NCBI GenBank assembly: GCA_002104905.1
Contig: MCFE01000219.1
Location: 1 to 64,000, forward strand
Source: Basidiobolus meristosporus CBS 931.73
Taxonomy: Eukaryota; Fungi; Basidiobolomycota
Reading direction: 5' to 3'
Length of the DNA stretch: 64,000 nucleotides
Shown: piece by piece, positions 13,793 through 36,365 of the stretch
How the letters are laid out: each line of letters starts with the position of its first letter
Numbering within the stretch: the first letter of the stretch is position 1
Position numbers and translations under genes: made by a program
The notes under the pieces: generated by a model
Databases searched by the model: none
What the model was told of the DNA's origin: nothing
Seen by the model: only the letters and a program-made list of their open reading frames with translations

Positions 13793-13828
13793 TCAAAGCA
13801 AGAAAAGCACCATTCTGTGCAACATAAG

Positions 13829-16800
13829 CCTTGTGAAAAATAATTTGTTCCTGCAGATGGATCTAATCCAGATCAGCCATCAATATCCCATCAGGAGATC
13901 ATCAAATACCAGCAGCTTGGAATTGATAACCCTCAACATAATCTTATGAAAAGATCACAACAGTATTTGGCTAAGTTTTCTGCTAAATAAAGCTAAAAAC
14001 ATGACAGCGTTTGAGCGGTGTTTTGCCAAGGGTGGGATGGCATTGTTGTGGTCTTAGTTTGCTCTACAAATACTTGTGTGCATTTAACTGGCCAGTACAT
14101 CTAATTGCCTTATATGGCAAGAAACTTGATGGTGTTTTAACAGCCTTGTTGCAAGCCTCAGATGGCATTATAACAGTAGTATTGCAGCCTACAGCTAGTT
14201 CTGTATAATGCTACTGCACCAATTAACCAAATGGTATTTCCTTTTTCTACCTCCCCTTGAGTAACCCATCTATTCCACTGTGGAGTCACCCATCTTTATT
14301 GGCTTACCCACAACTACCTTAGGTATTTCACATATAGTTTGAATCAAAAGTTACTATGGCCTCCTGCTTACAGACCTCTTTATACACACACCTGCCACAA
14401 TTGACATACATCTATCACCGCAACTTTATGGCTTTTTCATGTGATACTTGCAAAGTTGTCATATACCTTGTATTGCTGGTAACATATTAATCTTGCAAAC
14501 ATATGCTTGATTGCAACCACCTTGGCCATGAATACCTCCTGAATATCTGCAAAGAGCTTCTTGGAGTTTAGCCAATATATTCCTTCTCCCTGCTGGATTC
14601 TAGTCCCCCTTATAGGTGTGCTCTGGCTCTTGTTTGTGTGAATTCTGTAATGAATGGTGTAGAAGTTGGCTTGTGAACAAGAGAAATCTGACATATCCTG
14701 GAAGAGTTTTCCTGATAAAAATTATCTGCTTGATGCACCCAGCCCAGCTTTGCATTACTTAACTGATGACCCACACATTGGAGCTGCTTAGCTACTAAAT
14801 GAAGTAGGCATAGGTGCCACCATGTGCACATCTGTCCTCCATATTGTCCAGCTCTTCCTAGCTGTCCATCTTGTGCCAACTCATCACATCCATGATGGAC
14901 TTGAAGGTAGTATTATTGATGAAATTGTGATGTGGTAGTACCAGCAACTTGACTTGTCTTAATATCTTCCCACTCATCTGCTCCATAGGAAACTTCAGAA
15001 AGGTGAAGCAGGGCTCAATATTCTCAATACACCAAGCCAGATGAGGTAGTAAATGGATACAGTAGTGGCAGAGATCTACACATTCAGCTTTATGTTTGTA
15101 GTATAGTCACTCAAATCCCATCACCAACTCTTGGCACAAAAGCTGTAGATGCATCAAGCTGGCATTAGTGATCCACTTATGGATAAATATTATAGCAATG
15201 TCCGCATTTGACTCCCAATGCTTCCAACATACTCTTGGAAGAAATGACTTTAGAGTGCAACTTATATAAATACACATCCAGTTCATCCAATCCTTGCACT
15301 TGTTTTGATGCATATGAGTAAGAATGTTGATTGGAGTCTATGAGAAGTACCAAGGATAGCAGATACTCTGTAATATGTTGCCAATTCTTTCAAATTTCTC
15401 CAATATCTCAATGTGCTCAATTAGCATGATATGCCCCATGTACAACTTGGTCATCTGTATAGGGATATTGTTGAAAAGCAAGTGTATTGCTTCCAATAGA
15501 AGGCCTTTGCTCCAATAGATACCCTCTTTCTTAAGTATCTCTGGTTTTGGACTAGTCCTGTTTTTCAGTCAATGGCCTATAACTTGCCAATCTTGCTGCA
15601 AATGAATGCTTACATATGTATGTTCTCTCTGTAGGAGGTTGATATTCTTAGTGTTAGTGTTTGGGTAATAATCATGTGTGTGGGTTATGTTGTAAATTCC
15701 ATGTATCTCACACATTTGGCAGCCATACCATCCATTGTGCCAAGAAAAGCCAGCAATCCTGCTGATGGCTGGAGTATCTCCAATGCAGATAATTGTATTT
15801 GCTTTGACAATATGGCCATCTATTAATATCCAGCTGTAAGGCACACAAAATTCATCCAGCAATGGATACAGATAGCTAGCCATGTTGGACAGTGATTTAG
15901 GCCCAGATACCAGCAAGACCACCATCAGATTTAGGTTCTGATACCATAAGATAGGCAGCAGATTCAGGTTGATGAGAATTGGTGGCCAGCAGGATTTGCT
16001 GGTGGATTACTTTTTTAATGAGAATCCATCAAGTGCCAAGGCTAAGGCATGATCATGAATACCTTCAGAGTAGCCCTTGCTTCTTAGCTATTTGTAACTT
16101 TTGCCATCAAATATACTGGCTCTATTTGCACTTGATTGATAGTGAGTGTGGTATTTTATAGCCTCTCAATATTTGTTAAACTGCATGAGCTTCTTTAAAA
16201 AGTATTACCAGAATATATCTGGAGTGTGAACAATGTTTCCCCCAATGGTGGTGGATTCTAGACAAGTGGACACCTTGCAATGGTGGCATTTTCTGATGGG
16301 AATGCTGTGCAACTGCTAACCCACAATGGTATCAGGATGGTCTCTGGGTCACTTGTTGCCAACCACATAATGGTTGTCCATTTATGCCATGTACATGGTA
16401 AGTTGCACCCCAGGATGATTTTGGCAACAAGTAGTAGTAAATCCTCAAAGCCCCCATTACTGATGTTAGTGGAAACTCACCTTCATATATATGCTGCCAA
16501 AAAATAAAGCAAAGTTGTCAGGTTCCCAATTAAACCCCACTGCTGACAGCTGCAGAAGAATGGTTAGACAACAGCTTGCTTGGCAATCAGTGCATCAAGC
16601 AGGGCTACAACCAAAAATGGCACTGTGTACTATGTGACCACTGAAGGTCATAATGCAGGCTCTCAGTCAAGTGGGCAAGTGACAATCACTGTGGAGTCTC
16701 AAGCTGACCATAATGCTGAGGCAGATGAGAATATTGCACAAGCAGTACATTCAGTTGAAGACCAGCAAGAGCCTGTTGTATCATCACCACCACCTGTATT

Positions 16801-18430
16801 AGCAAGTATATTGTCAGCACATAATGAAGCATTAATGAGGCAATTAGGTGCGGTGGCTGACATGATAGATGCAATGGCTCAGAGAAATCATGAAATAGTC
16901 TAGACACAGGATGAGTGGATAATATGTGTAAAGCAATCAATATCCCAGGTAGAGAGAGCAGTATCTTTGCATCAAAGCAAGAAATCAAGTAGCTAAATAT
17001 CACAGCCAAGAATTGAGTCATTTCCTGATATAACAGCAGAGAAACACCATACAGTCATTGAAGCATAACAACAGTGCCCAAGGATAAAGCTTACAGAAAA
17101 ACCTACCACAGCATGGGAGGGAGAAGCTGTGGTGTCTATGCCAAATCCTAAAAATCAAAAGATATTAATGATGCATGAAGCCATTGAGTGCAATGATGAA
17201 GAGTGGGCTAATATTTGAGAGGCCATTAGATGTCTAACATGCCTGTACCTTAAGGCCAGCATACCATGGGGCCATCAGGAGCTCAAGGCAAAGTAGAATG
17301 CACTTGACTTGTTCCATTACCATTATTCTTGATTCAAATAAGCAAGCAGATTTTGGGCCAGCATTGGTTTACTATCAAAGTATCTCAAGAATAGCAGAAA
17401 CTACCAAAGGTACACAAACAAGGGTTGAATGGCTAAAAAGCAGTGGCTTCCTCAAGAGCCTGCAACAAGCAGGGCCAAAAGCTCCAAATAAGCATCAAAG
17501 AGATATCAGGTGGCTGGAAGAGTGCTAATGAGGGATGGGCAGGCAGACACAGATGCACCAGCACAACATTCATCAAGGAAAAAGCTTAGTTCCACCAAGG
17601 AAGCACTCTGCCAAAGTTGCATTGAAGGACCTGGCAGTGATAAAAACCAGCAGCTACCTCAAGAGCCTGTCACAGCATGGGCTGAGAGCTCAAAATAAGC
17701 AGGAAAGAGTGTCAGATTGCCTGCAGAGTGCCAGCAAGGGATAAGCAGGCCAAACAGGTGCATCAAAGCAGTTTTTAGCAAGGAGAAAATGTATTTCAAT
17801 ACAATAAGCACTCTGAAAAAGTAGCAGTAAAAGACCTGGCAGTGATAAAGGGAAAGGGAGAAAAGTGTACCTAAGTCAGTGACATGAAATCATGAGAAAG
17901 AAGCTGCAGTTCTTGCAAATTATTGCTGTAAGCTTGGAAAAGACTGAATTCCGTCATAGCCAAGAAGAATTAACAACAAGAAAGCAGCTGTTTTGACAAG
18001 AGTTAGAAGTGCAGCCAGTTGAGCTACACTCCAGTGAGGTAAATGAGTTTGCAGAGAAAGGGAGTTGTCTACCACTGCCTCCACATTCTTCATTGATGAC
18101 TGAGTGTAGATCACACTGACAGACAAAGCAACAGTGTCAAAAACTCAAAAGGTTATCACAATCCCTTCAGTGAAGCTGTAGAACATTAATAAAAACACCA
18201 AGAGGTTGCCGCACTTCTTCAAGAGCAGCACTCAAGAAAATACACTTGAATATTCCAAAGATCTATTGCAAAGACTGGCAGATGAGGTGCTAGACCTTGT
18301 AGTGCCAGCTAAGGGCCAGGATGTTGGGAACTAGTGAGTGAACAGTGGCATAAAGCTGTAGGGTTCCTGCCAAAGTCATGGAAACAGTGCAGTATAGCAG
18401 ATATACTTATCAAGTGGTAATTTTGATGGA
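13829..18430 (-). mobile_element. CACTA/EnSpm copy: type A end, tnp2 transposase pseudogene (minus, ~14000-16540) and divergent gene A (plus, ~16580-18430); the far end is missing
   Basis: TIR CCTTGTGAAAAATAATTTG at 13829. Transposase_21 motifs VSGPKSLSNMASYLYPLLDEF and CIGDTPAISRIAGF...C..C. Homologous to 19852-22345. Confidence 0.8.
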
Positions 18431-18469
18431 GTTACTTGTTGAGTGTGGGATTGGGCTGGCTGATTTGGA

Positions 18470-19288
18470 CAAAATAAGTAAATAACTTTTATGAGGACAG
18501 CTTTACCAAAGTGTGCTAGGCTTCTTTGGTCACAAGACAGTTTTTACACCATTTGGTACAAAATTCACAAAAAGAAGAGCCAGAGAGCGCTTATAAGGGG
18601 ACTAGAATCCAGCAGGGAGAAGGAATATATTGACTAAATACCAAGAAGCTTGTTGCAAATATTCAAGTGGTATTTGTGACAAAAGTGGTAGCAACCAAGC
18701 ATATGTTTACAGGATATATATGCTATCAGCAATACAAGTCATATAGTAACTTGGCAAGCATCACACTGAAAACCCATAAAGTTGAGGTAATAGAAGCATG
18801 TTAATTGCAGTGGGCCTATGTGTATGAGGAGGTTAGTCAGCAGGAGGTCATAGTTTTTTTGATTTGAACTATATGCAGTGTATCCAAGGGAACAGTGGGT
18901 GCAGTAGCATTATACAGAACTAGTTGTAGGCCACTCTACTGCCATTAGAATGCCAGCAGAGATTTATACTGAGGCAGTCAGAACACCATCAAGCCTCTTG
19001 CCATATAAAGCAACTAGATGTATCAGCCAGTTAGGTCTGCTCAAATAAATGTAGAGTGCATTAAGACTGTCAGAAAGCTGTACAATTCTTGTCAAAAGAC
19101 TGCTAAAACACCATCAAGTTTTTACTTTATTTGGCAATAAATTCTGCAATTGCTATCTCAATCCCATCATAAGAATGTGTAGAGGATCAATATTTCCAAG
19201 CTGCCAGTATTGTGATGGCCTTATTGCAGGATCCTGACAGTGGATCCAGATTGGATCCACTTGCTGGACCATATTATTTTTCATAGGG
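18470..19288 (+). mobile_element. 3' fragment of another CACTA copy, ending in a type A terminus
   Basis: Homologous, inverted, to 13829-14750. Ends ...ATTATTTTTCATAGGG at 19288. Confidence 0.7.
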
Positions 19289-19329: not shown

Positions 19330-19851
19330 CACAATCTTACTATGCAATGAGACAGCACTTGTAGAGAAGATGCTAAGGATACTATATGGAGCCAAGTGAG
19401 CCCAGTAGTCCATTTACTGGTGAATGATGCAATGTTGTGGCTAGAGAAGTGGCATGCTTCCACCAATATCAATAATGGAGGCTTTGAGTATTCACTGCTA
19501 CTTCTTGCCAAAATTATCATGGCATGCAACTCTACATGTACTTGGCTCAAATGGAAAATTGTTATGCAGCAGGCAGCATATGGCCCAGAGACTGCCCTGA
19601 TACCAGTTTATTTTAACTGGTGTATGGCATTAACATCAGTAAATGCCACCATTACCAGGTGTCCCACTTATTAGGATTCCACCTCCACTTGAGGAAACAT
19701 TGTTCACACCTCAGATATATTCCAGTGATTCCCCATCTAAGGAAGCTCATGCAGTTAACAAGTATTAAGAGGCTATAAAGTACTGAATTTAGTTCAATCA
19801 AGTGCAAACATTTTTAATATACTTGATGGCAAATATTACAAACAACTAAGA
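19330..19851 (+). pseudogene. N-terminal part of the tnp2 transposase of the host CACTA copy (continues at 31791)
   Basis: Homologous to the reverse complement of 16090-16480 and contains RYIPVIPHLRKLM. The sequence CTAAGA resumes as (GA)AGTAAAGGCTAC after 31790, as in the uninterrupted copy. Confidence 0.75.
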
Positions 19852-20218
19852 CCCTATGAAAGATAATTTGGTCCCACAGGTAGATCCAATCCAGATCATC
19901 TGTTAAGATCCCATTTAGAGACCATCATAATAACAGCAGCTTGCAATTAGTGACCCTCCTGACAATCTTATAACAAGATCATGACGGTGATTTGCAAATT
20001 TTACAGCCAAATAAACAGATAAAACTTGACAATTTTTGATTGGTGCTGTGACAATATTCGCATGGTATTGTTGCAGTCTTTCAGCGCTCTATTACTACTT
20101 TAAGTGGATCCAGTTGGCCAGGACTTCTAATTCCCTAATATGGCAAGAAACTTGACGGTGTTTTGATGGCCGCACAGCAAGACTCTGATGGCCTTTTCTT
20201 GGCAGTATGACTTATGAA

Positions 20219-22304
20219 TTACAAGACTATGGCATCCTGCTGACTAACTGTTACATATGTGCACACCTGCTGCAATTGACGTACTTTTATCACCTCAACT
20301 TTAAGGCTTTTTAGTGTGATACTTGCAAAGTTGCCATGTACCTTGTACTGCTGGTAGCATATACATCTTGTAAACATATGCTTGGTTGTTGCCACTTCTG
20401 CAATGAATACCTCCTGAATATTGGCAAAGAACCTCTTGGTATTTAGCCAATATATTCCTTCCCCCTGCTGGATTCTAGTACCCCTTATAGGTGTGCCCTG
20501 GCTTTTGTTTGTGTGAATTCTGTATTGAATGATGTATAAGTTGGCTTGTGACCACAAGAAATCTGGCATATCTTGGTGGAGTTTTCTTGATAAAAATTAG
20601 TTGCTTGTTGCACCCAACCCAACTTTGCATTACTTAACTGATTACCCACACATTGGGGCTGCTTAGCTTTGTTATGATCTGCCGCTTGAATGTTTAAGTT
20701 AGATCAGTTTTTAGTCAAATCAATTAGTATATGTTTAGGTTATCACTATATCAGTTTTATTTATGAAATCAGTAGCATTAGTCAGCAAATGAATCAGCAG
20801 ATCCTTATTAGACAGAAATAGATATATTAAGTAAGATCTTATTGGGTGATGATGATGCAATCAAATGAGTCATCAGCCACAACCTACATTAGGAAATACA
20901 ATTAGTCAGCAATAGATCTGGCAGAATGTATATAAGGAGCTGTTGGAACCTCAATAAAAATCAGTTCAAGTTTTAGTGAATACAATACTAGCTAAACTCC
21001 CTATTCCTCTACAACTCTTATACCAAGACTTGTAACAGCTTCTTAATACCACAAGCATTTGTGTCTCCATGTGCACATTTGTCCTCAGTATTTTCCAACT
21101 CTTTCTGGCTGTCCTCCATGTGCCAACTCATCACATCCATGACAGACTTGAAGGTAATATTCTTGATGAGATTGGGATATGGTAATACCTGCAACTTGAC
21201 TTGTCTTCCTATCTCCCTACACATCTGCTCTACAGGAAACTCCCAAAAGGTGAAGCAAGGCCTGATATTCTCCGCACTCCATGCAAGATGGAGTAGAGAA
21301 TGGAAACAGTAGTGGCGGAGATCTACACGTTCAGCTTTACGTTTGTAGTACAGTTGCTCAAATACCATTGCAAACTCCTCACACAACAGCTGTAGATGTG
21401 TCAAGTTGGCATTGGTTATCTGCTTCAGGATAAATATTCCTACAATGTCCACATATGACTCCCAATGCTTCCAATGTACTCTTGGTAGGAATGGCTTCAG
21501 AACACCACTTGAATAAATACATATCCAGTTCATCCAGTCTTTGCATTTGTATTGTTGCATATGCATATGAATATTAATTGGAGCCTGTGAGAAGTACTTA
21601 GGGTAGCAGATACTCTGTAATATCTTGCCAATTCTTTCAAATTTATCTGGTATCACAAAGGGCCCATTTAGCTTGAAGTGCCCCATGTACAACTTGATCA
21701 GTATAGGTATATTGTTGAAAAGCAAATGCATTGCTCACAGTGGAAAGCTTTTGCTCCAAGAGATACCCTCTATCTTAAGTATCTCTGGTTTCCAATTGAT
21801 TCCATATTCTGGCCAATGGCTTATAGCTTGCCAACTTTGCTGCAATTGCATACTTACTTCTGTATGTTCTCACTGTGGAAAGATGATATTCTTAGTGCTG
21901 GTGTTTGTGTAATAATAATATGTGTGAGTTATAGAGTGAATCCCCTGGATCTCACACATTTGACAGTAATACCGTCCATTGTGCCTGGAAGAACCTGCTA
22001 TCTTGCTGATGGCTGGGGTATCTCCAATGCAGATAATAATATGCGCTTTTACATGACGGCCATTTACTGTTATCCTGCTGGAAAGCATACAAAATTCATC
22101 CAGCAATGGATACAGGTAGCTATCCAGGTTGGATGGTGACTTAGGCCCAGATACCAGTGACACTACCATCAGATTATTGCTCTGATACTGTAAGATGGGT
22201 GGCAGATTCAGATTGATGAGAATCAGTGGCCAGCAGGATTTGCTGGTAGAGTACTTGCTTAATGAGAATCCATCAAGTGCTAAAGCAAAGGCATGGTCAT
22301 ACAT
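20219..22304 (-). pseudogene. Transposase_21 (tnp2) CACTA transposase, 5'-truncated, frameshifted and split by a solo LTR
   Basis: ALALDGFS...SCWPLILINLNLPP...VSGPKSPSNLDSYLYPLLDE...GDTPAISKIAG...C..C, and HSLLHLAW...PCFTFWEFPVEQ. Confidence 0.9.
20670..21037 (+). repeat. Solo LTR of the Gypsy family at 714-10367
   Basis: TGTTATG...TGTAACA with 4-bp TSD GCTT (20666-20669, 21038-21041). Confidence 0.95.
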
Positions 22305-22530
22305 ACCCTCAAAGTAGCCCTTGCTTCTAGGCTATTTGTAATGTTTTGGACAAGGAAGATATCCAAAAGATTATGGAAACTTTTGGCAAAGATGACGTTT
22401 ATGTTGCAAACTCTTTGTTTAGTGCTGTTACAAATGTTGCTGCCTTAAATAAATAATTGTTGTGTGCATGATCATATCAACTTTTGATTATTATACTTTT
22501 TAAAAAGTGTTTTTTATCAGATGTTAATAT

Positions 22531-23038
22531 TTTAGATCAAACATATCTTATATTAAACTTGAGCGTATAAAACTTTCTGGTTTAAAACAAACTTATCTTG
22601 GATCAAACCTAAACGTCTAAACCCGTTTTAAAACTAAATAACATATCTTATATTAAACTTGAGCGTATAAAACTTTTTTAACACAAACTTATCTTGGATC
22701 AAACCTAAACATCTAAACCTGTTTTAAAACATACTTATCTTGGATCAAACCTAAATGTCTAAACCTGTTTTAAAACAAACTAACTTATGTTAGATATAGC
22801 TCATCTTGGATCAAACTAACTAGCTTTTCTCATATTAAACTTGAGCGTATAAGACTGTTTTAAAACTAACTAAATCATCTTATATTAAACTTGAGCATAT
22901 AAAACTTTTTTAAAACTAACTAACTCATCTTATATTAAACTTAAGCGTTTAAAGCTAACTAACTCATCTCATATTAAGCTTGAGTGTATAAAACTTTCTG
23001 GTTTAAAACTAACTAACTCATCTTGGATCAAACCTAAA
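22531..23038. repeat. AT-rich array of two interleaved motifs
   Basis: TATTAAACTTGAGCGTATAA-like motif at 22551, 22651, 22833, 22883, 22933 and 22972. ATCTTGGATCAAAC at 22595, 22691, 22737, 22803 and 23020. Confidence 0.95.
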
Positions 23039-23119
23039 CTTCAATGCCTAGAATACTTCTGTCTTCCATGCCTACACCTTTTAAAAAATAACTTCTTACC
23101 TTCTTCAACCATTCCCCAT

Positions 23120-23827
23120 TTATGGATACCACACTATTGGCATTGTCTCCATCTCATATACCAACATCTCATTCACCCTTATAAATATATTCTCCTCCTC
23201 AAACTTTTTATCCAACCCATTCATATCCCCTATCTTCCCCACTTTTATCAAATACTTTGACCCTACGCAATCTTCTAAATTTATTGCATCCTTCCCTATT
23301 AATATCATTTCTATTCTCCCTCCCCTCTTCATATATATATACTTTGACAGCTCCCTTGTAAACTCTTCCCACAATATTCTATGATTCGCCAAAAATTTAT
23401 CACAATTCACCCCTACCATAAATCCTACGTTTATCATAAACACCCCCTGTGATACCCATTGTCTTAACATCTCTTTTGGCTCTGACATATCTACCTCATA
23501 CTCTAACCCTACTTTCTTTGCCATTAATATTGCCTCCATTGGATTCTTCCTACACTCCAATGACGGCATTAACCCTATCCCTAACGCATACTCTACCCCT
23601 GTCACATTACACGCACTATTATACGGCTCTTTACACACTATTACCACCTTTATCTTATCCGGTTCCATCAGTCTTAACATCCTAAACACATTTTTCTTCT
23701 TTGGCAACACTTCCAATTTTGACTCTTTTAACGTCTTTAATACTCTCCCCAGTATATCCATGATTTTCTCAAAAAATTCTTCCCACCCTTTTATCATCAT
23801 GAATATTCCACCTACCAAATCTTCCAT
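23120..23827 (-). CDS. Uracil-DNA glycosylase family-1-fold protein with degenerate catalytic motifs (~235 aa, intronless; probable ATG at 23827)
   Basis: Collinear UNG hallmarks VLP...VF, DKIKVVIVCKEPY, TG, MPSL, WVSQGVFMIN, H...WEEFT, MILIGKDA, F...N..L and PIVW. GQDPY is replaced by CKEPY and HPSP is absent. Confidence 0.85.
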   Translation of the reverse strand: MEDLVGGIFMMIKGWEEFFEKIMDILGRVLKTLKESKLEVLPKKKNVFRMLRLMEPDKIKVVIVCKEPYNSACNVTGVEYALGIGLMPSLECRKNPMEAILMAKKVGLEYEVDMSEPKEMLRQWVSQGVFMINVGFMVGVNCDKFLANHRILWEEFTRELSKYIYMKRGGRIEMILIGKDAINLEDCVGSKYLIKVGKIGDMNGLDKKFEEENIFIRVNEMLVYEMETMPIVWYP

Positions 23828-24180
23828 CCTTGATGACAAATATACCAAACTTTACCTCCAAAAACTTATCAATAATAATAATACCTCCGTTCTTGTTAAA
23901 AATAATATTATTTTTACCAACAAACAAAATCAAAACCTTTTTTATTTACTAAATTCCGTCAAAAATTCCTTTATACCAATGCACCCAATTTTTCTGCATC
24001 CACCACCAACAACGCCCTCTGCAAATACCACGGCGCCAACAACGTCCTCATCCTTGAATCTCAGCTCCGCTCTGCCGACAAAGGTAGCAACTTAGTCCAG
24101 TAAAGAGACTGCAAAGCTCACAAGAATCCAATCTAAGTTCTACAAGAAACTACCACTTTTCTGTTGGAAAAGTCCCCTCT

Positions 24181-24367
24181 AAGAAACCCCTTTACTCTTA
24201 AGACACCCATTAGAGACTCTTTTAAGAAGCCCCTTTAGGCACCCCTTTAGTGTAAAGTCCACTTTAGAGACCACTACAAGAAGCCCCTTTACTCTAAAGA
24301 CACCCCTTTAGACACCCCTTTTAGTCTTAAGACCCCTTTAGAGACTTCTACAACACACCCCTTTAGG
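24181..24367. repeat. Imperfect tandem array with ~8 CCCCTTTA units
   Basis: Read directly. Higher-order unit AAGAA(A/G)CCCCTTTACTCT(T/A)AAGACACCC. Confidence 0.9.
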
Positions 24368-24425
24368 TTAATCATAGTGTGGAGATTCTGGAAAGAGAGG
24401 CTCTCCCTTTATTTTTCAGCTGGGG

Positions 24426-24801
24426 AAGTTATATATATGAAAATTTTGAAGGATCAAAGTTTTTGGGTGATTGTGCAAGTAATACACGTGATACAAAGCT
24501 AAAATTATGCAGTGGCGCAGATCGGACATAGGCGCAGCATCTGTGAGAATTTCATGTGATATGATTGGCTGGTTTGAAAGTTACACACAATCAAAGTCAC
24601 CATAGTAATCCTAAAAGTTATATATATGAGAATTCTCAAGGATCAAAGTTTTTGGGCAATTGTGGAAGCAATACACGTGATACAAAGCTAAAATTATACA
24701 GTGGCGCAGATCAGACATAGGCGCAGCACCTGTGAGAATTTCATGTGATTTGATTGGCTGGTTTGAAAGTTATATGCAATCAAAGTTGCCATAGTAATCC
24801 T
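24426..24801. repeat. Two tandem copies of a 189-bp unit
   Basis: Copies start at 24426 and 24615. Each contains CACGTG, GTGGCGCAGATC and GATTGGCTGG. Confidence 0.95.
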
Positions 24802-25255
24802 TGCAATAATGCATAATATATAATAATTGGACTCTTTTGGTCATAACTCCTCAAGTACTGCTTCAAATGAGCTGCAATTTGAAACATGTGTTGACTGTTG
24901 TAAGAGTCTTGGAGATATTGGAAGTGATTGGGAGAACAAGTAGATTATGTGGTTTTCACTTAATGATTTATTGAATGTAAAAGTAGTATTTATACTTTTA
25001 CCTGGTCTTGGCATTACAAACACGTAGAATAGGTTAAGGAAGGTCCCAAGAACATGTGTGCAAAGTTTGGGGCTGTTTGGACAACTTTGAGAATTTTCAT
25101 GTTCTGGGTACCTGGTATTTTGGTGAAAATATTCTAAGTAAATCCCGACAAGGAATTTGGTCAGTATTTTCTAGGATTTGAAGGTAATGATCTAAGTGAC
25201 TAAGTTAGGTGAATATTTAGGTGGAAATACAAATTTTTACAACACTCCCACTCAG

Positions 25256-28200
25256 CTAAATGTTCATACTGACTAGTCCTAATTTTGACCTAAGATATTC
25301 AAACTTGTCTCTACCTAATGGTTTGGTAAATATGTCTGCAATCATTTCATCTGTAGGACAGTAAACTAAGCTAACTAAGTTACTCTCTATAGCTTCATGT
25401 ATGAAATGATGTCTAATATCTATGTGCTTGGTTCTAGCATGAAAAGTTGGATTTCTACCTAATTGTATACATCCTTGATTATCTTGAAATAAAGTAATAG
25501 GCGTTTTTTGACATAGGCCTAAATCTGTAAAGAGCTTTCTTAGCCACATTGCTTCTTTTGTAGCTTCACAGGCTGCCATATACTCTGCCTCTGTAGTAGA
25601 AAGTGCTACGGTTGGTTGCTTTCTTGAATTCCATGAAATTGCTCCTTTACAGTAAAGAAAGGTGTATCCTGTGGTGGATCTTCTGTCTTCTAAATTTTGT
25701 CCCCAATCAGCATCAGAGTATCCCACAAGATCCTGTTCTGAATCCTTATAAGTGTATCTTAAGCAGATATCAGCAGTTCCTTTTAGGTATCTAAAAATCC
25801 GCTTAACTGCTGCAATATGATCAGATCCATAATTCTGATTATGTTGGCTGACAACTCCGATGGCACCAAGCTCTCTTGATTTGGTTGAGTTTTGACCAAG
25901 TTAAGGTTTGTCTCCATTGGGGTAGCTGCCGGTTTACAGTCTTCCATTTTGTACTTCTTTAGTATATCTTGAATATACTTGGATTGGCTTAGGGTAATAG
26001 TCTGGGTACTTCTGTCTATGGAGAACTTAATCCCTAAGTAGTAACTGAGTTCTCCTAGATCGGACATCTTGAACTCCTTAGATAGGCTGGATTTAGTCTC
26101 TTCCAATGTTTCCAGGTTATTGGTGGCTATAATAAGATCATCCACATATAGAGCTAATAGAACTGGATTTGCTCTATCTGGCTTATAGTATATACTATAG
26201 TCAGCATTACTCCTTTTGAAACTCAAAGATTCCAAATAAGAATCTATCTTGCAATTCCAGGCTCTTGGTGATTGTTTGAGACCATATAGTGACTTTGTAA
26301 GCTTGCAGACCAAATGGGGGTTATCTTGGTCAACAAACCCATCAGGCTGGTCCATATACATGTCCTCATCAAGTTCTCCATTCAAAAATGCAGTTTTTAC
26401 ATCCATTTGATGAATAAAAAACTTATATTTGGCTGCAATAGCCAATATTAATCTGATGGAATTAAACTTGGCTACCGGTGCAAAGGTCTCAGTATAGTCA
26501 AGTCCTTTTGTTTGAGAGTATCCTTTGGCTACAAGTCTTGCTTTGTATCTTTCAATTGTACCATCAGCCTTGTACTTTGTCTTGAAGACCCATCTGCATC
26601 CAATTGATTTTTGGTTGATTGGTAATTTGACTAAGTCCCAAGTTTGATTTTCCATCAGGGCCTGATATTCCTCAGTCATTGCAGATCTCCAAAACTTTGT
26701 CTGAGGGCTATTTAGGGCCTCTTTTACAGTCTGGGGTTCATCAATATGGACTGAATAGGCATAGGCTAAGTTTGTACCCTCATTGATATAGTAATTTGGG
26801 CTATTTCTTGTCCAATTGGATCTCCGGGCATTTGATACTGGAATGATCACTTCTGGGATATTCCTGGGCACTGATTCTGGCTGAACCACGGTTGTAGAGT
26901 CCTCTGGAGTGAAAAAATTCTCATTGTTTTGCTCTGATTCAATCCTGACAATTGGTGGACTTGAGATCAAATTTTCGTCATCATCTGATGTCATTTTTTG
27001 TGAAAATTTTGAATATTCATCAAACAACACATCCCTGGACTTGATCAGCTTCTTTGCTTTGGTATTGTAGAGTCTGTATGCCTTACTCTCATTGCAGTAG
27101 CCCAAAAATATGCATTTTACACTTTTTGGCTCAAATTTTGACTGATTTCCGGCCAGTTTTTTGGCATATGCTGTACACCCAAATATTCTTAGATGTTCTG
27201 CACTTGGTCTGTATCCATACCATGCTTCAAATGGAGTAGAATCACGAAGTATTCTGTTATAACTCTTATTTTTAAGATATACAGCAGTGGCAACTGATTC
27301 CACCCAAAAATCATAGGATAATTTTTGATCATGGATCATAGATCTTGCCATATCAATTATTGATCTGTTAGCTTGTTCTGCTACTCCATTTTGCTGTGGG
27401 GAGTATGGTACAGTAGTCTCTTGCTTTATCCCATGAATTTTGCAGAAGTGGATGAAGAGTTTTGAGGTATATTCTCCACCATTGTCAGAGCATATTTTCT
27501 TGATTTTTTCACCAGTTTCTCTCTCCACCATGGCTTTAAACTCCCTGAACTTAGACAGAGCTTCTTCCTTTCTCTCCACAAAGTAGACCCATGTGTATCT
27601 TGTATAATCATCAATAAAAGTGATTAAATACTTCATCCCGCTGTGGTGGTGTATAAGTCCAAGGGAGAGATACGTCCAACACTTCTCAAGTGTTTTGTGT
27701 GTGGGGTGTTCACTGGGTGCGATAACCTCTGGCAAAAGCTTGCTAGGAATACTTGGGTTCTGTCTCTAATCTAATGTGAAGGGGAATAAAGCCACAAGCT
27801 TGTCAAGGGAAAACTATTGAGCTACAATCCCCAACTTAGTTGGCGTCTTAACAAAAGTATGTGCTGGGTTCAGCGTCCTTTGAGATGACAATGTACTAAA
27901 GCTTCCAAAGTCAAAACAACTGTAAACTCCACCAGCAGGGACTTGATAAGAATGCAGCTTTGGTCAATAGTTACAAAGACAGAAAAGTATCTTTGCCTGT
28001 ACAAGAACAAACTTGGGAAAGAATCAAATATAATAAAAGATACCTACTCTGAGTATTCCTCACAAGTAGTGCCTCCAAGGTCAGTTGGCTGTCAGCGCGG
28101 TTTCCTGGGAGTGTCCTGTGGTCTAGGGTTGGAAGTTCAGGTAGCAGCAGGTAGCAGTGATCACACTAATCAACAAGTTGGTATATTGATAAAAGGGATG

Positions 28201-30214
28201 ATGATTTATTGTTGAGGGATAGCCTCCCTTATATACTTTTCTTACTGGCTAAGTGATTACTAATCATGGTGTTCCAGAAGGTTCCAGAGATCAATAGAAA
28301 TCTTAATGACATCAGAATGACCTAAGAATGTTCTAAGTAGGTGCCGGAAGGTTCTAAGAGGCACAGCACATCCGACCAATCAGGAATCAGTATTCTGAAA
28401 CCTGTGTAACATGGGGATACCATATATGGTATGGAAATGGTAGGGATGGTAACACGGGCTGATCATGTGTCATGGGTACTGGCGCGGGTACTTGCCTAAT
28501 ATAGAAGTACTTATAGCTAGTAATCTTACATAAAGTGAGGGTTAACTTATGCAATAAGGTAAGCAGGTGTGATAGTCAACCGGCTTATGGGATAGTACTG
28601 ATTGGGTAAGACAAATGGGATAAAACTAAAATAAGTGTAGTAGAGATATAGGGAAGTAGAAAATAAGGGAATGAGCACATCTGTCAGTGGGTGTCACTGT
28701 CACCCCACTACACCGCCAAGGATAAATTTTGCATAGGTCCACACAGATCTGAGTGAATTAGATCTAATTTTTTCTTAGTTTTGATTAACCCAGAGCTCTT
28801 GAATGGTTGTCTGGCTTGTTTCCCATATATGCAGGCTTCACAGTGCTCCAAATTAGCTGGGGGATCAATTTTCACTCCAGAAATTAGCTGATCTTTGATC
28901 ATTTTACGCAAATAATCAAAATTGATGTGTCCAAGTCTCCTGTGCCAAAGCATTGGTGTTTCTTCATTTAAGTTACTTATATTGGCTTCCAGATATGATG
29001 GAATATAAGTCAACTTGTATAGATTCTGATCTCTGATGCCCAAAGCAATATGAGCACCATTTTGATCAGTGATCTGCATCCAGAATTGTCAAAACTGAAA
29101 CTGAGTCCTTCTGCTGTGGCCTTGCTTACAGAGAGTAGGTTCTTGGCTATTTCTGGTACATAGAGTACTTCTTTAAAGGTCAGTGTATGGCTTCCTTCAC
29201 TGCTTCTTAAGGTTTACTTGGATAGTTCCTTCTCCCACTGCATCAAGTGTTCTATTGTCACCCATGAAAACCTTCTTAATTGGAATTTCTTGATATTGGG
29301 TAAAAAGTTCTTTTTGGTGTGTAAAGTGTTGAGAAGCTCCAGAGTCAATATACCACGTCTGAGAATCCTTGTTTGTGGTCATATTTAGTGCAGATATGAA
29401 TAGTCTATCTTCAGTTGTTGCAGCATTTCCATATTCAGGCTTCTTTTGCTGATAATCTCTCTTTTTGAAACACCGGTCTGATGTGTGTCCTTTCCTTTTG
29501 CAGTAGTTGCAAAATAGGTTGCTGTTGCCTTTGTAGGGTCTTGGGTACCTCCTTTGTTGGTTATCATTGCTTATTAAAGCATTTTCTTCTTCCTTCTTAT
29601 TGGCGCTTGATTTTCTTAATTCTTCATCCAGGAGCCTTCCATATACGTAATTTAAGGTCAAATCTTCAGTTCTGGACTCTAGGGCTGATACAAGGCCCTG
29701 AAACCTGTCTGTCAGGCTATTCAGGATGGTAACTATCACATCCTCATCAGTAGTTGGTACGCCCACAGATTCCATCTCATCTACCAGCAGGGTAATTCTG
29801 TTAATTAGATTTTTCATTTCTTCTCCTGGCAGCATCTTTGTAGTAAAGAATTTTCTTCTCAGATACATTTTCTTGGCAGCTGAACATGACTGGTAGGTGT
29901 CTTCTAATGCTTTCCAGGCATTCTTTGCCTGTTTTTGCTCTTGAGCATTGAATTAGCAATTTGTCCTTGACATTAAGGCAAATGCAGTTAAAGGCACTTT
30001 GTTCTTTCTTCTGGTACTTCAAGGCTTCCTCTCCCACGTTTTTAGGAGGGCATTCTTCTCCTATGACAATATCCCAAAGGCCTCTTTCTTGCAGCAGCAT
30101 CTTCATCTTCACCTTCCACACTTGGTAGTTAGATCCATCCAACTTTTCAGCAGAGGGAAAAATTCCAGTAATAGCAGTAGTAGACATTGCAGAGAGTGAC
30201 AGCTTGGGGCTCAT
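25256..30214 (-). pseudogene. Copia family 2 gag-pol (gag frameshift, solo-LTR insertion in integrase, deletion in the RT-RNase H linker)
   Basis: LDGSNYQVWKVKM, CNYCKRKGHTSDRC, WYIDSGAS, HSDLCGP, FIDDYTRY, SDNGGEY, MDVKTAFLNG, LYVDD, YSDADWG, ADIFTKPL. Confidence 0.95.
27642..28712. repeat. 1071-bp solo LTR (or LTR-like insertion) of an unrelated family
   Basis: TGTGGTGG...CCACTACA termini with 4-bp TSD CCGC (27638-27641, 28713-28716). The Copia integrase rejoins across it. Confidence 0.88.
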
Positions 30215-30758
30215 AACCTGTTGTAAGAGTCTTGGAGATATTGGAAGTGATTGGGAGAACAAGTAGATTATGTGGTTTTCACTTAATGATTTTTTGAATG
30301 TAAAAGTAGTATTTATACTTTTACCTGGTCTTGGCATTACAAACACGTAGAATAGGTTAAGGAAGGTCCCAAGAACATGTGTACAAAGTTTGGGGCTGTT
30401 TGGACAACTTTGAGAATTTTCATGCTCTGGGTACCTGGTATTTTGGTGAAAATATTCTAAGTAAATCCCGACAAGGAATTTGGTCAGTATTTTCTAGGAT
30501 TTGAAGGTAATGATCTAAGTGACTAAGTTAGGTGAATATTTAGGTGGAAATACAAATTTTTACAACATTGACTACTATGTGTTCTGTATGACATAACATT
30601 CTTGGGTGAATTGCATGTCTGGGTCTGGAGCATTTGTCCTTCAAAGTTGGAAATTCTTGATCTTTCACTTGTGTGTTACAATAGCAAAAAGCAAAATAAT
30701 GAAATGAGTGCAATATTGGTTCAGAGATATTGTAGTAATGGAATACTTTCCATTACCA

Positions 30759-31489
30759 CAGATAAAGGAAAAGGTAAAGGGAAAAAGGTCTACCCAAGCC
30801 TGAGACAGGGAGGCATGCAAAAAAAACTGCAGTTCTTGCCAATTAATGCCACAAGCCAGGAACAGACTGAATCCCATCATAGCCAAGAAGAATTACCAAC
30901 AAGAAAACAGCTGCTTTCACAAGAGTTGGAAGCGCAGACAGTTGAGCTACACTCCAGCAAGGTAGATGAGTTTGCTGAAAAAGGCAATTTGTCTACCACA
31001 GCCTCCACAGCCTCCATTGTTGACAGAGTGGAGATCCCACTGAAAGATAAAGCTACAATGTCAAGAGCTCAAAAGACTATCACAATGCCTTCAGTGGAGT
31101 TTTGGAACATGAATAGGCATACCAAGAGGTTGCAGCACTTCTTCAAGAGCAGTGCTCAAGAAAACACACTGGAATATTGCAAGGATTTATTACAAAGACT
31201 GGCAGATGAGGAGCTAGACCTTGCAGTGCTGGCTGAAGACCAGGACATGCGGGAACCAGTGAATGAACAGTGGCATAAAGCCATTGGGTTCCCACCAAAG
31301 TTGTGTAACCAGAGCATTACAGCAGAAATACTTATTGAGTGGTGGATTTTAATGGAGTTACTTGTTGAGTGTGGGGTTGGGCTTAATGTTAGTGTAGGGT
31401 ATAGAGACTTGTATAGGTCAATACAATTGGCAATTGAGGTACAACCAAGTTTCAACAGAAATAAATCAATTTGTATGCATGAAAAGTAA
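30759..31489 (+). pseudogene. C-terminal part of CACTA-associated gene A (unknown family), best-preserved copy
   Basis: Open frame (track ORF 30602-31489), homologous from ~30759 onward to 17840-18430 and to the reverse complement of 10770-11470. It points toward the type B terminus. Confidence 0.7.
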
Positions 31490-31790
31490 GAGATACGGTT
31501 GAGGAAGTAAAGAGTGTGAAAAGAGGCAATAGCCAATCAATTCACACAAACATAGGAGGCAATAGAGTGTTCAGGATCAGAATGTGAGCAAATTGGCAGG
31601 GAACCAATCAAAAGCCACTTATACATTGTTTTGATGAAAAATTTTAACAAAGTTTTTTGTGAAATCTGGGGTGCAATTATTTTTCAACAGTCTCTGGACG
31701 GTGTCCTGACAAGATCTGTACCTCTTAGTCACAGGACATTAACTTTGTGACGGCCTTTTGATGGCATCATGTCAATAATTTTTCATAGGG

Positions 31791-34400
31791 GGAAGTAAAG
31801 GCTACTTTCAAAGTATGTATGACCATGCTTTTGTCTTGGTACTTGATGAGTTCTCATTAAACAAGTACTCTGCCAGCAAATTCTGCTAGCCACTGATTAT
31901 CTTCAACCTAACTCTGCTGCCAATCTTGCAGCATCAGAACAGAAATCGGATGGTATTTTCACTGATATCTAAGGCCAATCATTATTGAATCAGGATAGCT
32001 ACTTGAATCCATTGCTAGATGTGTTTTGTATGCTATCCAGCAGAATACTAGTTAACAACTATCAACTCAAAGTTTGTATTATTACCTGCATTGGATATAC
32101 CATGGCCTTAAGTAAGATGGCCAGCTTTTCTGGGCACAATGGATGGTATTGCTGTCAATTGTGCAAGATCCAGGGGATTTATTCCATAATTCACACATTA
32201 TTATTATCCCACCACCAATACTGAGAGCATCATCTTCTCACAAAGAGAACTGACAGAAGTCAGCGTGCAATTGCTGCAAAGCTGGCAACTATAAGCCATT
32301 GATCAGAATATGGAATTAATCAAAACCAGGGTGTCATGATCACATGACAATCATGAACACCCATGCCAAGTTTCAGCTTCATAGCTCAATTTCTAAGAGA
32401 TTCCTTCTGGAACCTTCTACCACCTTCAAGAAAGTTCCTGACCCTTCCAAACCACTGTTACACAATGGAACATTCCATGGAAGCTTCCCATTGTATTTTT
32501 CATAGTCCAGTACCATATATGGAAATACCAGGTCACATGACTTAGTCACATGATCAGGTGACCTAATCCACTTCCCCATCCTGTCTCAGTGCCGTGTCAT
32601 CTATGTCATTATCCCCAGCACCATTGCTGTGCCTCACCCCACAACCCCATTAGTATTAGCCAATATCTCTTGGCATCAGTATAACAAAAAAAGTGTATAT
32701 AGTCCTATCCCCCCTTAAGTATTCCTCAGTCTGATAAACACAGGTCTTGAATAAACAGCCTTGCCTTGAATCCTGCCTTGCCTTGATGGTCCACACCTAA
32801 GTTCTTTCCTGCCATGCCTAGCTTTTCCTCCTGCCTTGTGTCTATTCATTACACAGGGACACTAAAGATAGTAGGAATCTGTTGCAGCAAGAGCTTCCCA
32901 TTGGGAGCAATGCATTTGCTCTTCAACAATACATATGTTAGGACTGTATGATCTGGATATTTATTGATTTAAGTGGCCTTCTGAAGCTATTTCTGCCCTA
33001 AGTACATTGGAAGCTTTAGCAGTCATATGTAAACATTGTAGGAATATCTATCCCAAAGCAGATCACCAATGTCAACTTGGCCCATTTGGAGCTTTTATGT
33101 AAGGAGTTCTTGACAGGGTTTGGGCAGCCATACCACTGGAATAAAGCTAACCATGTAGATCTCTACCACTACTGCATCCATTCTTGACTCCATCTTGCTT
33201 GGTGTGTGGAGAATACTGGACCTTGCTTCACTCTTTAGGAGTTTTCTATGAAGTGGATGTGAGGAGAGATAAGATGTGGAGTCAAGTTGCAAGTTCTACC
33301 ATATCCCAAACTCTTCAGAACATAACCTTAAAGTCTGTCATCAATGTGTTCAGTTAGCATGTGAATGACAGCCAGAAAGAATTAGATAATACTGAGGGCA
33401 GATGTGCACATGGACACACCTATGCCTTAAACATTAAGAAGCTAAGAAGCCCCAATGCATTGGTAATCAGTTAAGCAATGCAAAGTTCAGTTGGATGCAA
33501 CTAGCAGCAAATACCTATTAGGACAACTTTACTAATGTATGCCAGGCTCCTCCTGGGTACCAGTTGATTTCTATATCATTCAATATGGAATTCATTCAAA
33601 CAAGAGCCAGAGCATACCCATTAAGGGGACTAGGATTCAGCAGGGAGAAGGAATATATTTGCCAAGTACCAAAAAAACTTGTAAATATTCAAGAGGTATT
33701 TATGGCAAAAGTGGTGGCACCAAGCATATGCTTGCAAGATGTTTATGTTACCTATAATACAAGGTATATGGTAACTTGGCAAGTATCACATGGAAAAGCC
33801 ATAAAGTTGAGGTGATAGAAGCATGTCAATTGCAGCAGGTGTGCACATATGTAGCAGTTAGTCAGCAGGATGCCATAGTCTTTTTAATTCAAGCTCTGTG
33901 TGGAATGCCAACAACAGTAGTGGGTAAGCAAATAGATTAGGGTGATTCTATAATGAGATATATGAATGTTACTAGGGGGTGGCAAAAGGAAAAACTATTT
34001 GGTAAACTGGTACAGTAGCATTATACAGTACTAGCTGTAGGCTGCCATGCTGCTGGTATAATGCTAACTGATGTCCAAATCAAGGCTGTCAAAATGCCAT
34101 TAAGTTTTTTTCCATATAGGGAATATGCAAATACTGGCTGGTTGGGTCCAGTCAAATAAGTGTAAGCTGCAATATGACTGTTAGAATGCCATTTAAATCC
34201 CATTGAAGAACCACCTAAACTCTGTTAAGTTTACTAACCTATTTGGCAGTAAAATCAGTAAAACACTGCCACAATCCCATCATAAGATTGTTAGGAGGGT
34301 CATTAGTTTCAAACTGTTGGTATTATCACAGCCCCATTGCAGGATCTTAATATCTGCTCCAGATTGGATCTACCTGCAAGACAAGTAATTTTTCATAGGG
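31791..34400 (+). mobile_element. Remainder of the host CACTA copy: tnp2 fragments, 3' region and type A terminus
   Basis: Homologous to the reverse complement of 19852-22330. Ends GTAATTTTTCATAGGG at 34400. Confidence 0.8.
32332..32853 (+). repeat. 522-bp solo LTR of a third family
   Basis: TGTCA...TTACA termini with 5-bp TSD CAGGG (32327-32331, 32854-32858). tnp2 homology rejoins across it. TATA-like GTATATAG and AATAAA inside. Confidence 0.85.
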
Positions 34401-36365
34401 TTTGAGGAAAGTATTCCACCATTGTCAGGGCTTATTTTCTTGATTCTTTTCACCAGCTTTTCTTTCCGTTATGACTTTAAGCTCCCCAAGCCTAGATAGT
34501 GCTTCTAATTTTCTTTCCAGGAAGTAGACTCAAATGTGTCTGGTACAATATCAATAAATGTGATTAAACACTTCATTCTACCAATGGACAAATTTTGCAT
34601 AGGTCAACACAGATCTGGGTAAGTTAGATTAGTTTTCTTTGTAGTCTTGAATAACCCAGAGCTATTGAACAGTTGTCTGGCTTGTTTCCCATTTATGCAG
34701 GCTTCACAGTGCTCAAAATTAGCAGAGGGAGCAATTTTTACTCCAGAAGTTAGCTGATATTCAACCATCTGGTGCAAATAATAAAAATTTATGTCCAAAT
34801 CTCCTGTGCCAAAGCTTTGGTGTTACTTTGTTCAAGTTACCTATATTGGCTTCCAGACATGATGGAATATAAGCTAACCTGTACAGATTCTGATCTGTGA
34901 CACCCAAAGCAATATGAACATCATTTTGATCAGTGATTCTGCATGCAAAATTGTCAAAACTAAATTGATTTATTTGGCTGTTGCCTTGCCTATGGATAGC
35001 AGATTCTTGGCTATTTCTGGTACATGGAGTACTTCTTGGAAGGTAAATATGTTGCTTCCTTCACTACTTCCAAGGTTTACTTGAATAGTTGAACTGTTCT
35101 ATCATCACCCATGAAAACCTTTTCAAATAGAGTTACTTGATATTGGGCAAAAAGTTCACTTTGGTGTGTAAAGTGTGAAGATGCTCCAGAGTCAACATAC
35201 CACCTCTGAGACTGCTTGTTTGTGCGCATTTTTAGTGCAAATATTACTATTCTATCCTCACCTGTTGCAGTATTTCAATATTCAGGCTTTTTCTGCTGAT
35301 TGACTTTCTTTTAGAGCAGCAGTTTGATGGGTGTCCTTTCCTTTTGCTGTAGCTGCAATAAAGTTGATGTTGCCTTTAAAGGGTCTTGAGTACCTCCTTT
35401 GCTGGTTATCATTGCTTATTAGAGCATTTTCTGCTTCCTTCTTATTTGCACTGGATTTTCTTAATTACTCATCAAGGAGCCTCCCATATATATAATTCAA
35501 GATCAAGTTTTCAGTTCTGGGCACTATGGCTGATACAAGGCCCAGAAATCTGTCTGTCAGGCTATTCAGTAGGGTAACTATCACATCTTCATCAGTAGTT
35601 GATATGCCCACTGATTTCATCACCCCACCCAACAGTGTAGTTTTATTAATGAAATTTCTCATTTCTTCTCCTGGCAGCATCTTTGTAGTAAGGGATTTTT
35701 GTCTGAGATACAATTTCTTAGCATCTGAACATGACTGGTAGGTGTCATCCAATGCCTCCCAGACACTCTTTACCATTTTTGCTCTTGAGCATTGATTAGC
35801 AATTTGTCTTTAGCATTAAAGCAAATGCAGTAAAGGACACTTTGTTCTTTGTTCAGGTACTTTAAGTCATCCTTTCCCACGTTTTTAGGAGGGCATTCTT
35901 CTCCTATGACAATATCCCAAAGGCCTCTTTCTTGTAGCAGCATCTTCATCTTCATCTTCATCTTCAACTTCCACACTTGGTAGTTAGATCCATCCAACTT
36001 TTCAGCAAAGGGAAAAATTCCAGTAATAACAGTAGTAGACATTGCAGAGAGTGACAGCTTGGGGCTCATGACCTGTTGTAAGAGTCTTGGAAATATTGGA
36101 AGTGATTGGGAGAACAAGTAGATTATGTGGTTCTCACCTAATGATTAATTGAATGTACAAGTAGTATTTATATTTTTACATGGTCTTGGCATAACAAACA
36201 TGAAGAATAGGTTAAGGAAGGTTCCAAGAACATGTGTGCAAAGTTTGGGGCTGTTTGGACAACTTTGAGAATTTTCATGTTCTGGGTACCTGGTATTTTG
36301 GTGAAAATATTCTAAGTAAATCCCGACAAGGAATTTGGTCAGTATTCTCTAGGATATGAAGGTAA
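34401..36365 (-). mobile_element. Older truncated copy of Copia family 2 (partial LTR 36074-36365, gag, protease, start of integrase)
   Basis: Collinear with 27460-27640 and 28713-30510. PBS GGTCATGAGCCCC at 36061-36073. Cut off exactly at the CACTA terminus at 34400. Confidence 0.9.

Follow-up and report, generated by a model that had tools for sequence, protein, structure and literature searches.

The DNA analyzed here is a window of 64,000 nucleotides (positions 1 to 64,000 of contig MCFE01000219.1, assembly GCA_002104905.1) from the fungus Basidiobolus meristosporus CBS 931.73. An island of 2744 bp at 22349-30769 has no kinship to the remaining window, is foreign to both transposon and host, and occupies the place of the central part of a transposon copy of the tnp2 type (CMC/EnSpm). 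It carries an intact open reading frame (ORF) with a UNG fold and the remnant of a TFIIS-type gene, and its core appears to derive from a giant virus.

The boundaries of the island were set by comparing the window with itself. Homology of the tnp2 arm to other copies stops at 22348, and homology of the opposite arm, which carries a transposon gene termed here 'gene A', resumes at 30770, possibly already at about 30735. The island was later split by a retrotransposon, Copia-2 (24896-30567), and its size before that event was 2547 + 197 = 2744 bp. This agrees with a previous sequence-only reading of the stretch, in which about 2.7 kb of unrelated DNA was said to replace the transposon's centre and to have been split afterwards. 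Both island pieces (22349-24895 and 30573-30769) were analyzed as separate records throughout. Sensitive blastn and tblastx searches detected no island-like DNA elsewhere in the 64-kb window, so the island is single within it. Scans of the island for transfer RNA genes and Rfam families gave no match.

The left flank of the island (22349-22530) is T-rich, of ordinary strand composition and of unassigned origin. An open frame of 36 codons is located in this non-skewed flank at 22346-22456 on the plus strand. It displays some three-base periodicity, is too short to identify and could be what is left of a gene that is unrelated to the viral fragment and was captured along with it. A tandem array of 46-50-bp units in about 9-10 copies follows at 22531-23050, G-poor on the plus strand and without codon periodicity. 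The intact UNG-fold ORF occupies 23120-23848 on the minus strand. An AT-rich spacer (23849-23986) separates it from a TFIIS-type zinc-ribbon remnant (23987-24097, plus strand), which lies directly upstream and is divergent from it. The spacer is a putative viral bidirectional promoter region; the UDG/TFIIS spacers of relatives measure about 70-100 bp. Short degenerate repeats, G-poor on the plus strand, form the end of the skewed core (24098-24370). The right part of the island (24371-24895) has an ordinary composition and includes a 189-bp tandem repeat in two copies (24426-24801). It resumes at 30573 beyond Copia-2 with the island's final 197 bp (30573-30769). The repeat arrays mentioned in the sequence-only reading correspond to those at 22531-23050 and 24426-24801.

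The UNG-fold ORF and the giant-virus-like context of its relatives

The ORF comprises 242 codons from a TTG, or 235 from the first ATG, while the longest open frame among 2000 shuffles reached 121 codons. It was collinear with UNGs from end to end, with no gaps suggesting introns. An AlphaFold2 model built on 62 relatives obtained a predicted local distance difference test score (pLDDT) of 91.6 and a predicted template modelling score of 0.89. Foldseek aligned this model to many UNG structures with template modelling (TM) scores of 0.72-0.81. The best match in the PDB was the mimivirus UNG, and the UDGs of Pithovirus and Solivirus ranked first among the viral models. When solved structures were ranked by sequence, the mimivirus UNG again came first (E 7e-13), followed by bacterial, herpesviral and human UNGs. 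The length, the end-to-end alignment, the pLDDT and the TM scores of 0.76-0.81 are all in agreement with the intact, intronless UNG-fold ORF that had been proposed.

Family models matched the ORF at a distance. Pfam PF03167 (UDG) gave no match to it at E <= 1. The NCBIfam 'ung' models matched with E 2e-19 and a best score of 70.1 bits, below their cut-offs of 143-237, and TIGR00628 ('ung') yielded 68.7 bits against a cut-off of 185.75. A word-indexed protein search returned seven weak matches only, with a bacterial UNG at E 1e-9. A HMMER search of 1.84 billion representatives returned 1398 matches (best E 3.7e-32), none of them above 38% identity; the best relatives shared 33-38%. The top HMMER matches formed a divergent viral clade (E 1e-32 to 1e-20), whereas a giant-virus UNG with standard motifs was found at 2e-9. 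The ORF itself was returned by neither protein search, nor was any close relative, and an exact look-up found its product not on record; the ORF is unannotated. A scan of IMG/VR viral contigs with the single protein gave no match. In a neighbor-joining tree the ORF clustered with the relatives P0008, P0013 and P0009.

The two catalytic-type motifs of the family are altered in the ORF. Motif 1 reads C-K-E-P-Y instead of G-Q-D-P-Y; among the 62 relatives its positions were occupied by G (52), Q (52), D (38; S in 15 and E in 4), P (61) and Y (62). Motif 2 reads K-I-G-D-M-N instead of H-P-S-P-L-S, with His present in 54 and Pro in 58 of the relatives. The Asn of the uracil pocket is present, as in 61 of the 62. 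Loss of the canonical residues appears to be partly a trait of the clade, because the 19 nearest relatives often deviate too: Ser or Glu is frequent at the Asp position and several lack motif 2. Judged by sequence, the predicted protein is a UNG homologue and not an equivalog, belonging to a divergent giant-virus-type UDG-like clade, and is unlikely to act as a canonical uracil-DNA glycosylase.

All six informative contigs of relatives showed giant-virus-like neighborhoods. The neighbors were Rpb5 in P0008, PolB and kinases in P0010, TFIIS, Rpb5, Rpb1, Rpb2 and DUF5757 in P0011, Rpb1/2/5, a D5-like gene and SNF2 in P0012, D5 and TFIIS in P0013, and Rpb5, a histone and RNR in P0002. One distant match of the ORF was bacterial, and the contig of one further relative was too short to judge.

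The TFIIS remnant was first seen as a tblastx match to the P0008 locus, on the strand opposite to the ORF. Over its 37 aligned codons it shares 43% identity (pairwise E 2e-10) with an ORF of 61 codons, missed by gene calling, on L003, the contig of the closest relative. That ORF (3855-4040, minus strand) encodes a TFIIS zinc ribbon (Pfam E 1.3e-10) and is divergent from the UDG gene of the same contig. As this example illustrates, gene calls on the relatives' contigs skip small viral genes. The remnant also matches proteins of L006 and L007. Pfam PF01096 was its top match, yet below the cut-off. The remnant is broken, since 37 of 61-123 codons align, the frame is closed by stops at either end and some of the cysteines are missing. 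The sequence-only reading had proposed fragments of neighboring ORFs in the plural; one was identified, namely this remnant. No Rpb5-like similarity was detected in the island, although Rpb5 is located near the UDG gene in P0002, P0008, P0011 and P0012.

A divergent TFIIS/UDG pair is thus common to L003, L006, L007 and the island. Because this two-gene micro-synteny was kept, the putative viral core shows derivation from a viral genome as DNA, and not from a single retro-copied gene. The predicted giant-virus origin of the island core is well supported. The proposal that the island holds a piece of a gene-dense large double-stranded DNA virus has therefore held up, both in the giant-virus-like contexts of the relatives and in the micro-synteny.

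Base composition and the purine/pyrimidine partition

The GC content of the island falls to 0.25-0.38, and GC skew on the plus strand reaches -0.73, the sole such stretch in the window. For CpG, observed/expected ratios of 0.58-0.66 were obtained for the island core and the ORF; host genes reach 0.78, Copia-2 has 0.17 and the surrounding transposon cluster 0.05. Differences between repeat copies comprise 397 transitions and 245 transversions. The host depletes CpG in its own repeats and the island retains it, in line with the sequence-only reading, which had spoken of visibly deaminated repeats in the genome and of CG dinucleotides kept in the island. Its description of the island as AT-rich and purine-skewed on the coding strand was likewise accurate.

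The coding strand of the ORF contains A.36, G.31, T.27 and C.06. Its GC skew is 0.67, compared with a maximum of 0.30 in 38 genes of related loci and 0.05-0.10 in host genes. The bias is concentrated at synonymous sites. Four-fold degenerate third positions are A34, G34, T1 and C0 (68 of 69 purine), Ile is encoded by ATA in 19 of 20 cases and Leu by TTR in 21 of 24. In two-fold boxes, purine- and pyrimidine-ending codons stand at 88:46. Pyrimidines accordingly occupy 1 of 69 four-fold and 46 of 134 two-fold sites (p = 5e-9). The TFIIS remnant, encoded on the opposite strand, is the mirror image: its third positions are C24, T7, A5 and G1, and its four-fold sites are C13, T5 and A1 (18 of 19 pyrimidine). 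Taken on one DNA strand, about 97% of the free sites in the two genes are thus purines, and pyrimidines are kept at the sites that fix an amino acid. Because pyrimidines persist where they fix the amino acid, this partition means that the putative compositional drive acted while both proteins were under selection.

Amino acid composition was affected as well. Met accounts for 8.3% of the ORF product compared with 2.5 +/- 1.4% in relatives, and P+H+Q+T+A for 8.7% compared with 19.2 +/- 4%. At conserved columns, eight changes lead away from C-obligate residues and one towards them. None of 172 related proteins displayed an amino acid bias like that of the ORF. Non-coding DNA of the core is poor in G on the plus strand but has neither purine/pyrimidine bias nor three-base periodicity. 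At 23830-23964, the every-third-base pyrimidine pattern of the ORF carries on for about 115 bp past the start codon, through the spacer in the direction of the TFIIS remnant; either AT-rich DNA produced it by chance, or the N-terminus was once longer.

Several sources of the skew were considered and rejected. A bisulfite-like or deamination origin does not fit, since residual G on the plus strand also occurs outside CG, the coding strand shows no excess of T, and the four-fold sites hold A and G in equal numbers. The codon usage of the sampled donor clade is not the source either: five UDG genes and 38 neighboring genes of the relatives are of ordinary composition. Purine loading at the messenger RNA level is ruled out by the mirror bias of the divergent neighbor, and a uniform mutation pressure on one DNA strand does not fit the non-coding parts, which lack the purine/pyrimidine bias.

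Most likely, the extreme codon bias was acquired in the donor virus lineage under selection on both genes. The simplest reading of the composition is an unsampled donor lineage with extreme asymmetry. A bolder interpretation, which we consider rather improbable, is that the partition records a strand-specific mutation regime, as yet undescribed, that was filtered by protein-level selection. Its source would be either an unsampled lineage of fungal giant viruses with an extraordinary replication asymmetry, or a process of the host by which integrated viral DNA is rewritten on one strand, with selection continuing to act on the UNG-like gene as transposon-borne cargo. The codon-periodic partition shows that the two viral genes evolved, with selection acting on them, in a compositional regime that no sampled relative displays; either a virus lineage outside the sampling or a mutational process of an unknown kind is thereby indicated.

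The carrier transposon and later insertions

The island is enclosed by a composite transposon copy (copy 2; 19852-31790, plus strand) that extends from terminal inverted repeat (TIR) to TIR (19852-19871, plus strand; 31771-31790, minus strand). The order of the family can be seen in copy 1 (13829 to about 18457): terminus, tnp2 arm with a minus-strand gene, segment X, a gap, and gene A arm with a plus-strand ORF. Copy 2 has the same order and orientation. Its tnp2 (Transposase_21) arm (19852-22348, minus strand; Pfam PF02992) is 81.7% identical to copy 1 at 14808-16103, and its gene A arm (30770-31790, plus strand) is 82.4% identical to 17847-18457, so both arms have diverged to a similar extent. 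The gene A arm lacks the first ~730 bp that are present in copies 0 and 1. The island stands in for the copy 1 equivalent of 16104-17846 (about 1.7 kb), including the 5' regions of both transposon genes.

Read from 19852, the 13-nt TIR agrees at 12 of 13 positions with the other end of copy 2, whose last base is 31790, taken as its reverse complement. A search of the whole window that tolerated one mismatch located the string at 19276, 19852, 31778 and 34388 and nowhere else; each of these sites is a putative terminus. Copy 2 lies within copy 3, an inverted copy of its own family. The left half of this target (segment X; 19458-19851, minus strand) is equivalent to copy 1 16474->16082, and the right half (tnp2 arm; 31792-34400, minus strand, with a TIR at 34381-34400) is equivalent to copy 1 from 16083 onward. 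The target was thus split without loss (16082 | 16083 in copy 1 equivalents). The 3-bp flanks of copy 2 are AGA and GGA (2/3 match), and the target is otherwise continuous. Because the halves of copy 3 are contiguous around it, copy 2 appears to have entered the inverted copy 3 as a unit bounded by its own termini. An earlier idea, that all tnp2 copies are truncated at one point representing a natural end, was superseded by this nested-insertion model after the termini had been identified. The sequence-only reading had placed the island between intact CACTA ends. The enclosing TIR and the unit insertion agree with that view, but the termini do not, since those of the family begin with CCCTATG; a search for a CACTA-type TIR pair found none, only internal repeats.

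The transposase of copy 2 is broken into three ORF pieces of 116-237 codons, with the PF02992 match (E 7e-19) on a 144-codon piece, and its 5' region is displaced by the island. A 366-bp repeat, resembling a solo long terminal repeat (LTR) or a miniature inverted-repeat transposable element, lies within the tnp2 arm (20670-21037) and is 90-91% identical to 714-1079 and 10000-10367, giving three copies in the window. Copy 2 cannot, by this prediction, move alone, because its transposase is in pieces, the 366-bp insertion is present and the 5' region is gone.

The central stretch of the family (equivalents of about 16083-16650) has been interrupted three times independently within about 600 bp: copy 2 entered copy 3 there, the island is joined to copy 2 there, and copy 4 ends there, next to segment X of copy 3. 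The junctions concerned are 19288/19458, 19851/19852, 22348/22349 and 31790/31792. The region separating the two divergent transposon genes may be a hot spot for insertions. The adjacent nest at 10517-19288 consists of an inverted gene A arm (10517-12227), copy 1 without its right end, and an inverted partial tnp2 arm (copy 4; 18476-19288). These pieces are mutually about 72-83% identical and almost without CpG (0.05).

Copia-2 (24896-30567, minus strand) is an LTR retrotransposon with the Pfam domains RVT_2, rve and gag. Its LTRs (24895-25244 and 30218-30567) are 350 bp long and 99.1% identical, and a 5-bp target site duplication, TTGAC, is found at 24891-24895 and 30568-30572. The element is not intact, as its gag-pol frame is distributed over at least five ORF pieces. 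Copia-2 is young and inserted into an island that was already present.

Further elements were observed in the window. A partial second copy of the Copia-2 family at 34581-36370 is 86% identical to 28716-30515 and starts about 180 bp past the copy 3 terminus. Another Copia-type element (about 4925-9823) has terminal repeats at 5112-5292 and 9643-9823 (98%) and minus-strand RVT_2/rve ORFs. Two long intron-less host ORFs encode domain sets commoner in bacteria: SulP, STAS and cyclic-nucleotide-binding at 43934-45463 (plus strand), and SIS with CBS (KpsF/GutQ-like) at 50651-51643 (minus strand), the latter annotated in the NCBI record.

Origin of the island and comparison with known systems

The best explanation of the whole, which we consider probable, is that a fragment of a pithovirus-like giant virus was captured in the transposon and is carried as passive cargo. 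The core (about 22531-24370) would be a genome fragment of a pithovirus-like member of the Nucleocytoviricota, with a complete UNG-fold gene and the stump of its usual TFIIS neighbor. Together with about 0.9 kb of non-viral flanks, it would have replaced the central 1.7 kb of one tnp2 copy. Because these flanks lie inside the island, the captured DNA may have been chromosomal DNA already holding a viral fragment, copied or trapped between the transposon ends by abortive gap repair or by a capture of the Pack-CACTA type. The resulting non-autonomous derivative would then have entered another copy of the same family with its ends intact, and the 366-bp repeat and Copia-2 would have been gained later. 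Endogenous pithovirus-like elements sharing D5, SNF2, RPB1, RPB2 and RPB5 have been described in B. meristosporus and B. heterosporus (PMC7017919), and a large CMC-EnSpm expansion has been reported for Basidiobolus (PMC5751038).

Some observations weigh against this explanation. Hallmark giant-virus genes (PolB, D5, RNA polymerase subunits) were not found in the island, where only the ORF and the TFIIS remnant match viral loci. The viral relatives are only 33-38% identical, and most are unlabelled metagenomic contigs. The label 'pithovirus-like' rests on the fold ranking, the gene neighbors and one paper. The codon bias was seen in none of the five related UDG genes, so the donor lineage is hypothetical. 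The intact ORF and the retained CpG could also mean ongoing selection in the host, and the anatomy is fitted equally well by a replacement in situ.

In the latter case, an ordinary copy would have landed in copy 3, and repair of a later central break would have lost 1.7 kb and gained 2.7 kb of filler, either viral DNA or an ectopic endogenous viral fragment; the island would never have been aboard a moving transposon. We regard this course of events as possible, although unlikely. The repeated interruption of the family's central stretch, with three independent junctions in a few hundred base pairs, is consistent with it, as is the single island copy in the window. The higher CpG ratio of the island (0.58-0.66, against 0.05 in the arms) would fit a later arrival, but the CpG loss of the arms may have been inherited from the family, and the young Copia-2 is already at 0.17. 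Moreover, kilobase-scale filler with non-viral flanks is less usual than capture by gap repair. The window contains nothing that separates the order of events.

A functional role of the gene in the fungus is improbable. The UNG-like protein would be expressed and selected, for example as a uracil- or DNA-binding factor aiding the transposon or the host. The ORF is intact where shuffles never pass 121 open codons, pyrimidines persist only where the amino acid is preserved, CpG is retained, and the fold model is confident, with the pocket Asn present. However, the two motifs lack their Asp and His, and the 'ung' scores are far under the cut-offs. Codon usage is unlike that of host genes, the product is not on record and no close relative was returned by either protein search. 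The neighboring viral gene displays the same selection-filtered bias although it is broken, and selection therefore probably left its mark before integration. The carrier, itself defective, was subsequently disrupted by Copia-2.

That the ORF is a decayed paralogue of the host UNG, or the island an assembly chimera or contaminant, is very improbable: the ORF is homologous to cellular UNGs and each island junction was seen once only, but the divergent viral clade (E 1e-32 to 1e-20) is far closer than a bacterial UNG (1e-9) or a giant-virus UNG with standard motifs (2e-9), a viral TFIIS neighbor is present, the island is embedded in a 124-kb contig between host repeats, and a Copia hit with a clean target site duplication is possible only in vivo.

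Under capture as viral cargo, the UNG-like gene looks like a passive passenger rather than a counter-defence system, because its motifs are altered, its 'ung' scores lie below the cut-offs, its product is not on record and the transposase is broken. The sequence-only reading had suggested, as a hypothesis, a cargo system for counter-defence. This was not upheld: Asp and His are absent, the ORF reaches 70 bits where the 'ung' cut-offs are 162-237, it uses codons in a way alien to the host, the transposase is truncated at the 5' end as well as broken, and the carrier received two later insertions. At present the counter-defence reading is unsupported, and citing the locus as an example of it would be unwarranted.

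The ORF resembles the mimivirus UNG (PDB 5x55, 6lyd, 6lye) in sequence, in fold (TM 0.76-0.78) and in an extra Cys...Tyr-Ala-x-Gly stretch after motif 1. The mimivirus enzyme, however, has G-Q-D-P-Y and a long N-terminal extension, whereas the ORF has C-K-E-P-Y and lacks the His-Pro motif 2. With cellular family-1 UNGs (TIGR00628) it shares the fold, full-length collinearity and the pocket Asn, and it differs from them in both motifs.

The novelty claimed for the locus holds in part. Pithovirus-like DNA in Basidiobolus (PMC7017919) and Pack-CACTA capture in plants (PMC6379663) have both been published, but in the literature searched we found no report that combines endogenous giant-virus DNA with capture of foreign DNA between transposon ends in a fungus. 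Should the junctions recur in other copies, this would show that viral genes are spread within fungal genomes by cut-and-paste transposons, and such spread would bear on the persistence and co-option of giant-virus genes.

Like the endogenous pithovirus-like elements named 'fundsalphavirus' (Gong et al., 2020; PMC7017919), the island represents giant-virus DNA in an early-diverging fungus. The genes shared by those elements (D5, SNF2 helicase, RPB1, RPB2, RPB5) adjoin the relatives of the ORF, and Pithovirus-type UDGs are its best viral fold matches. The island differs in that it holds less than 2 kb of viral DNA without a hallmark gene, lies inside a DNA transposon and has an extreme codon bias. 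The screen in that study was based on DNA polymerase, and UDG and DNA transposons are not mentioned in it.

Copy 2 also resembles the Pack-CACTA or Pack-TYPE elements of plants (Catoni et al., 2019; PMC6379663), which are non-autonomous and combine the termini of a family with an unrelated captured interior. Neighboring or nested insertions of the same family and aberrant events have been invoked for their formation (PMC6379663). In contrast to the plant elements, copy 2 occurs in a fungus, has long arms (2.1 and 1.0 kb) with gene remnants, and carries viral cargo instead of a host gene fragment.

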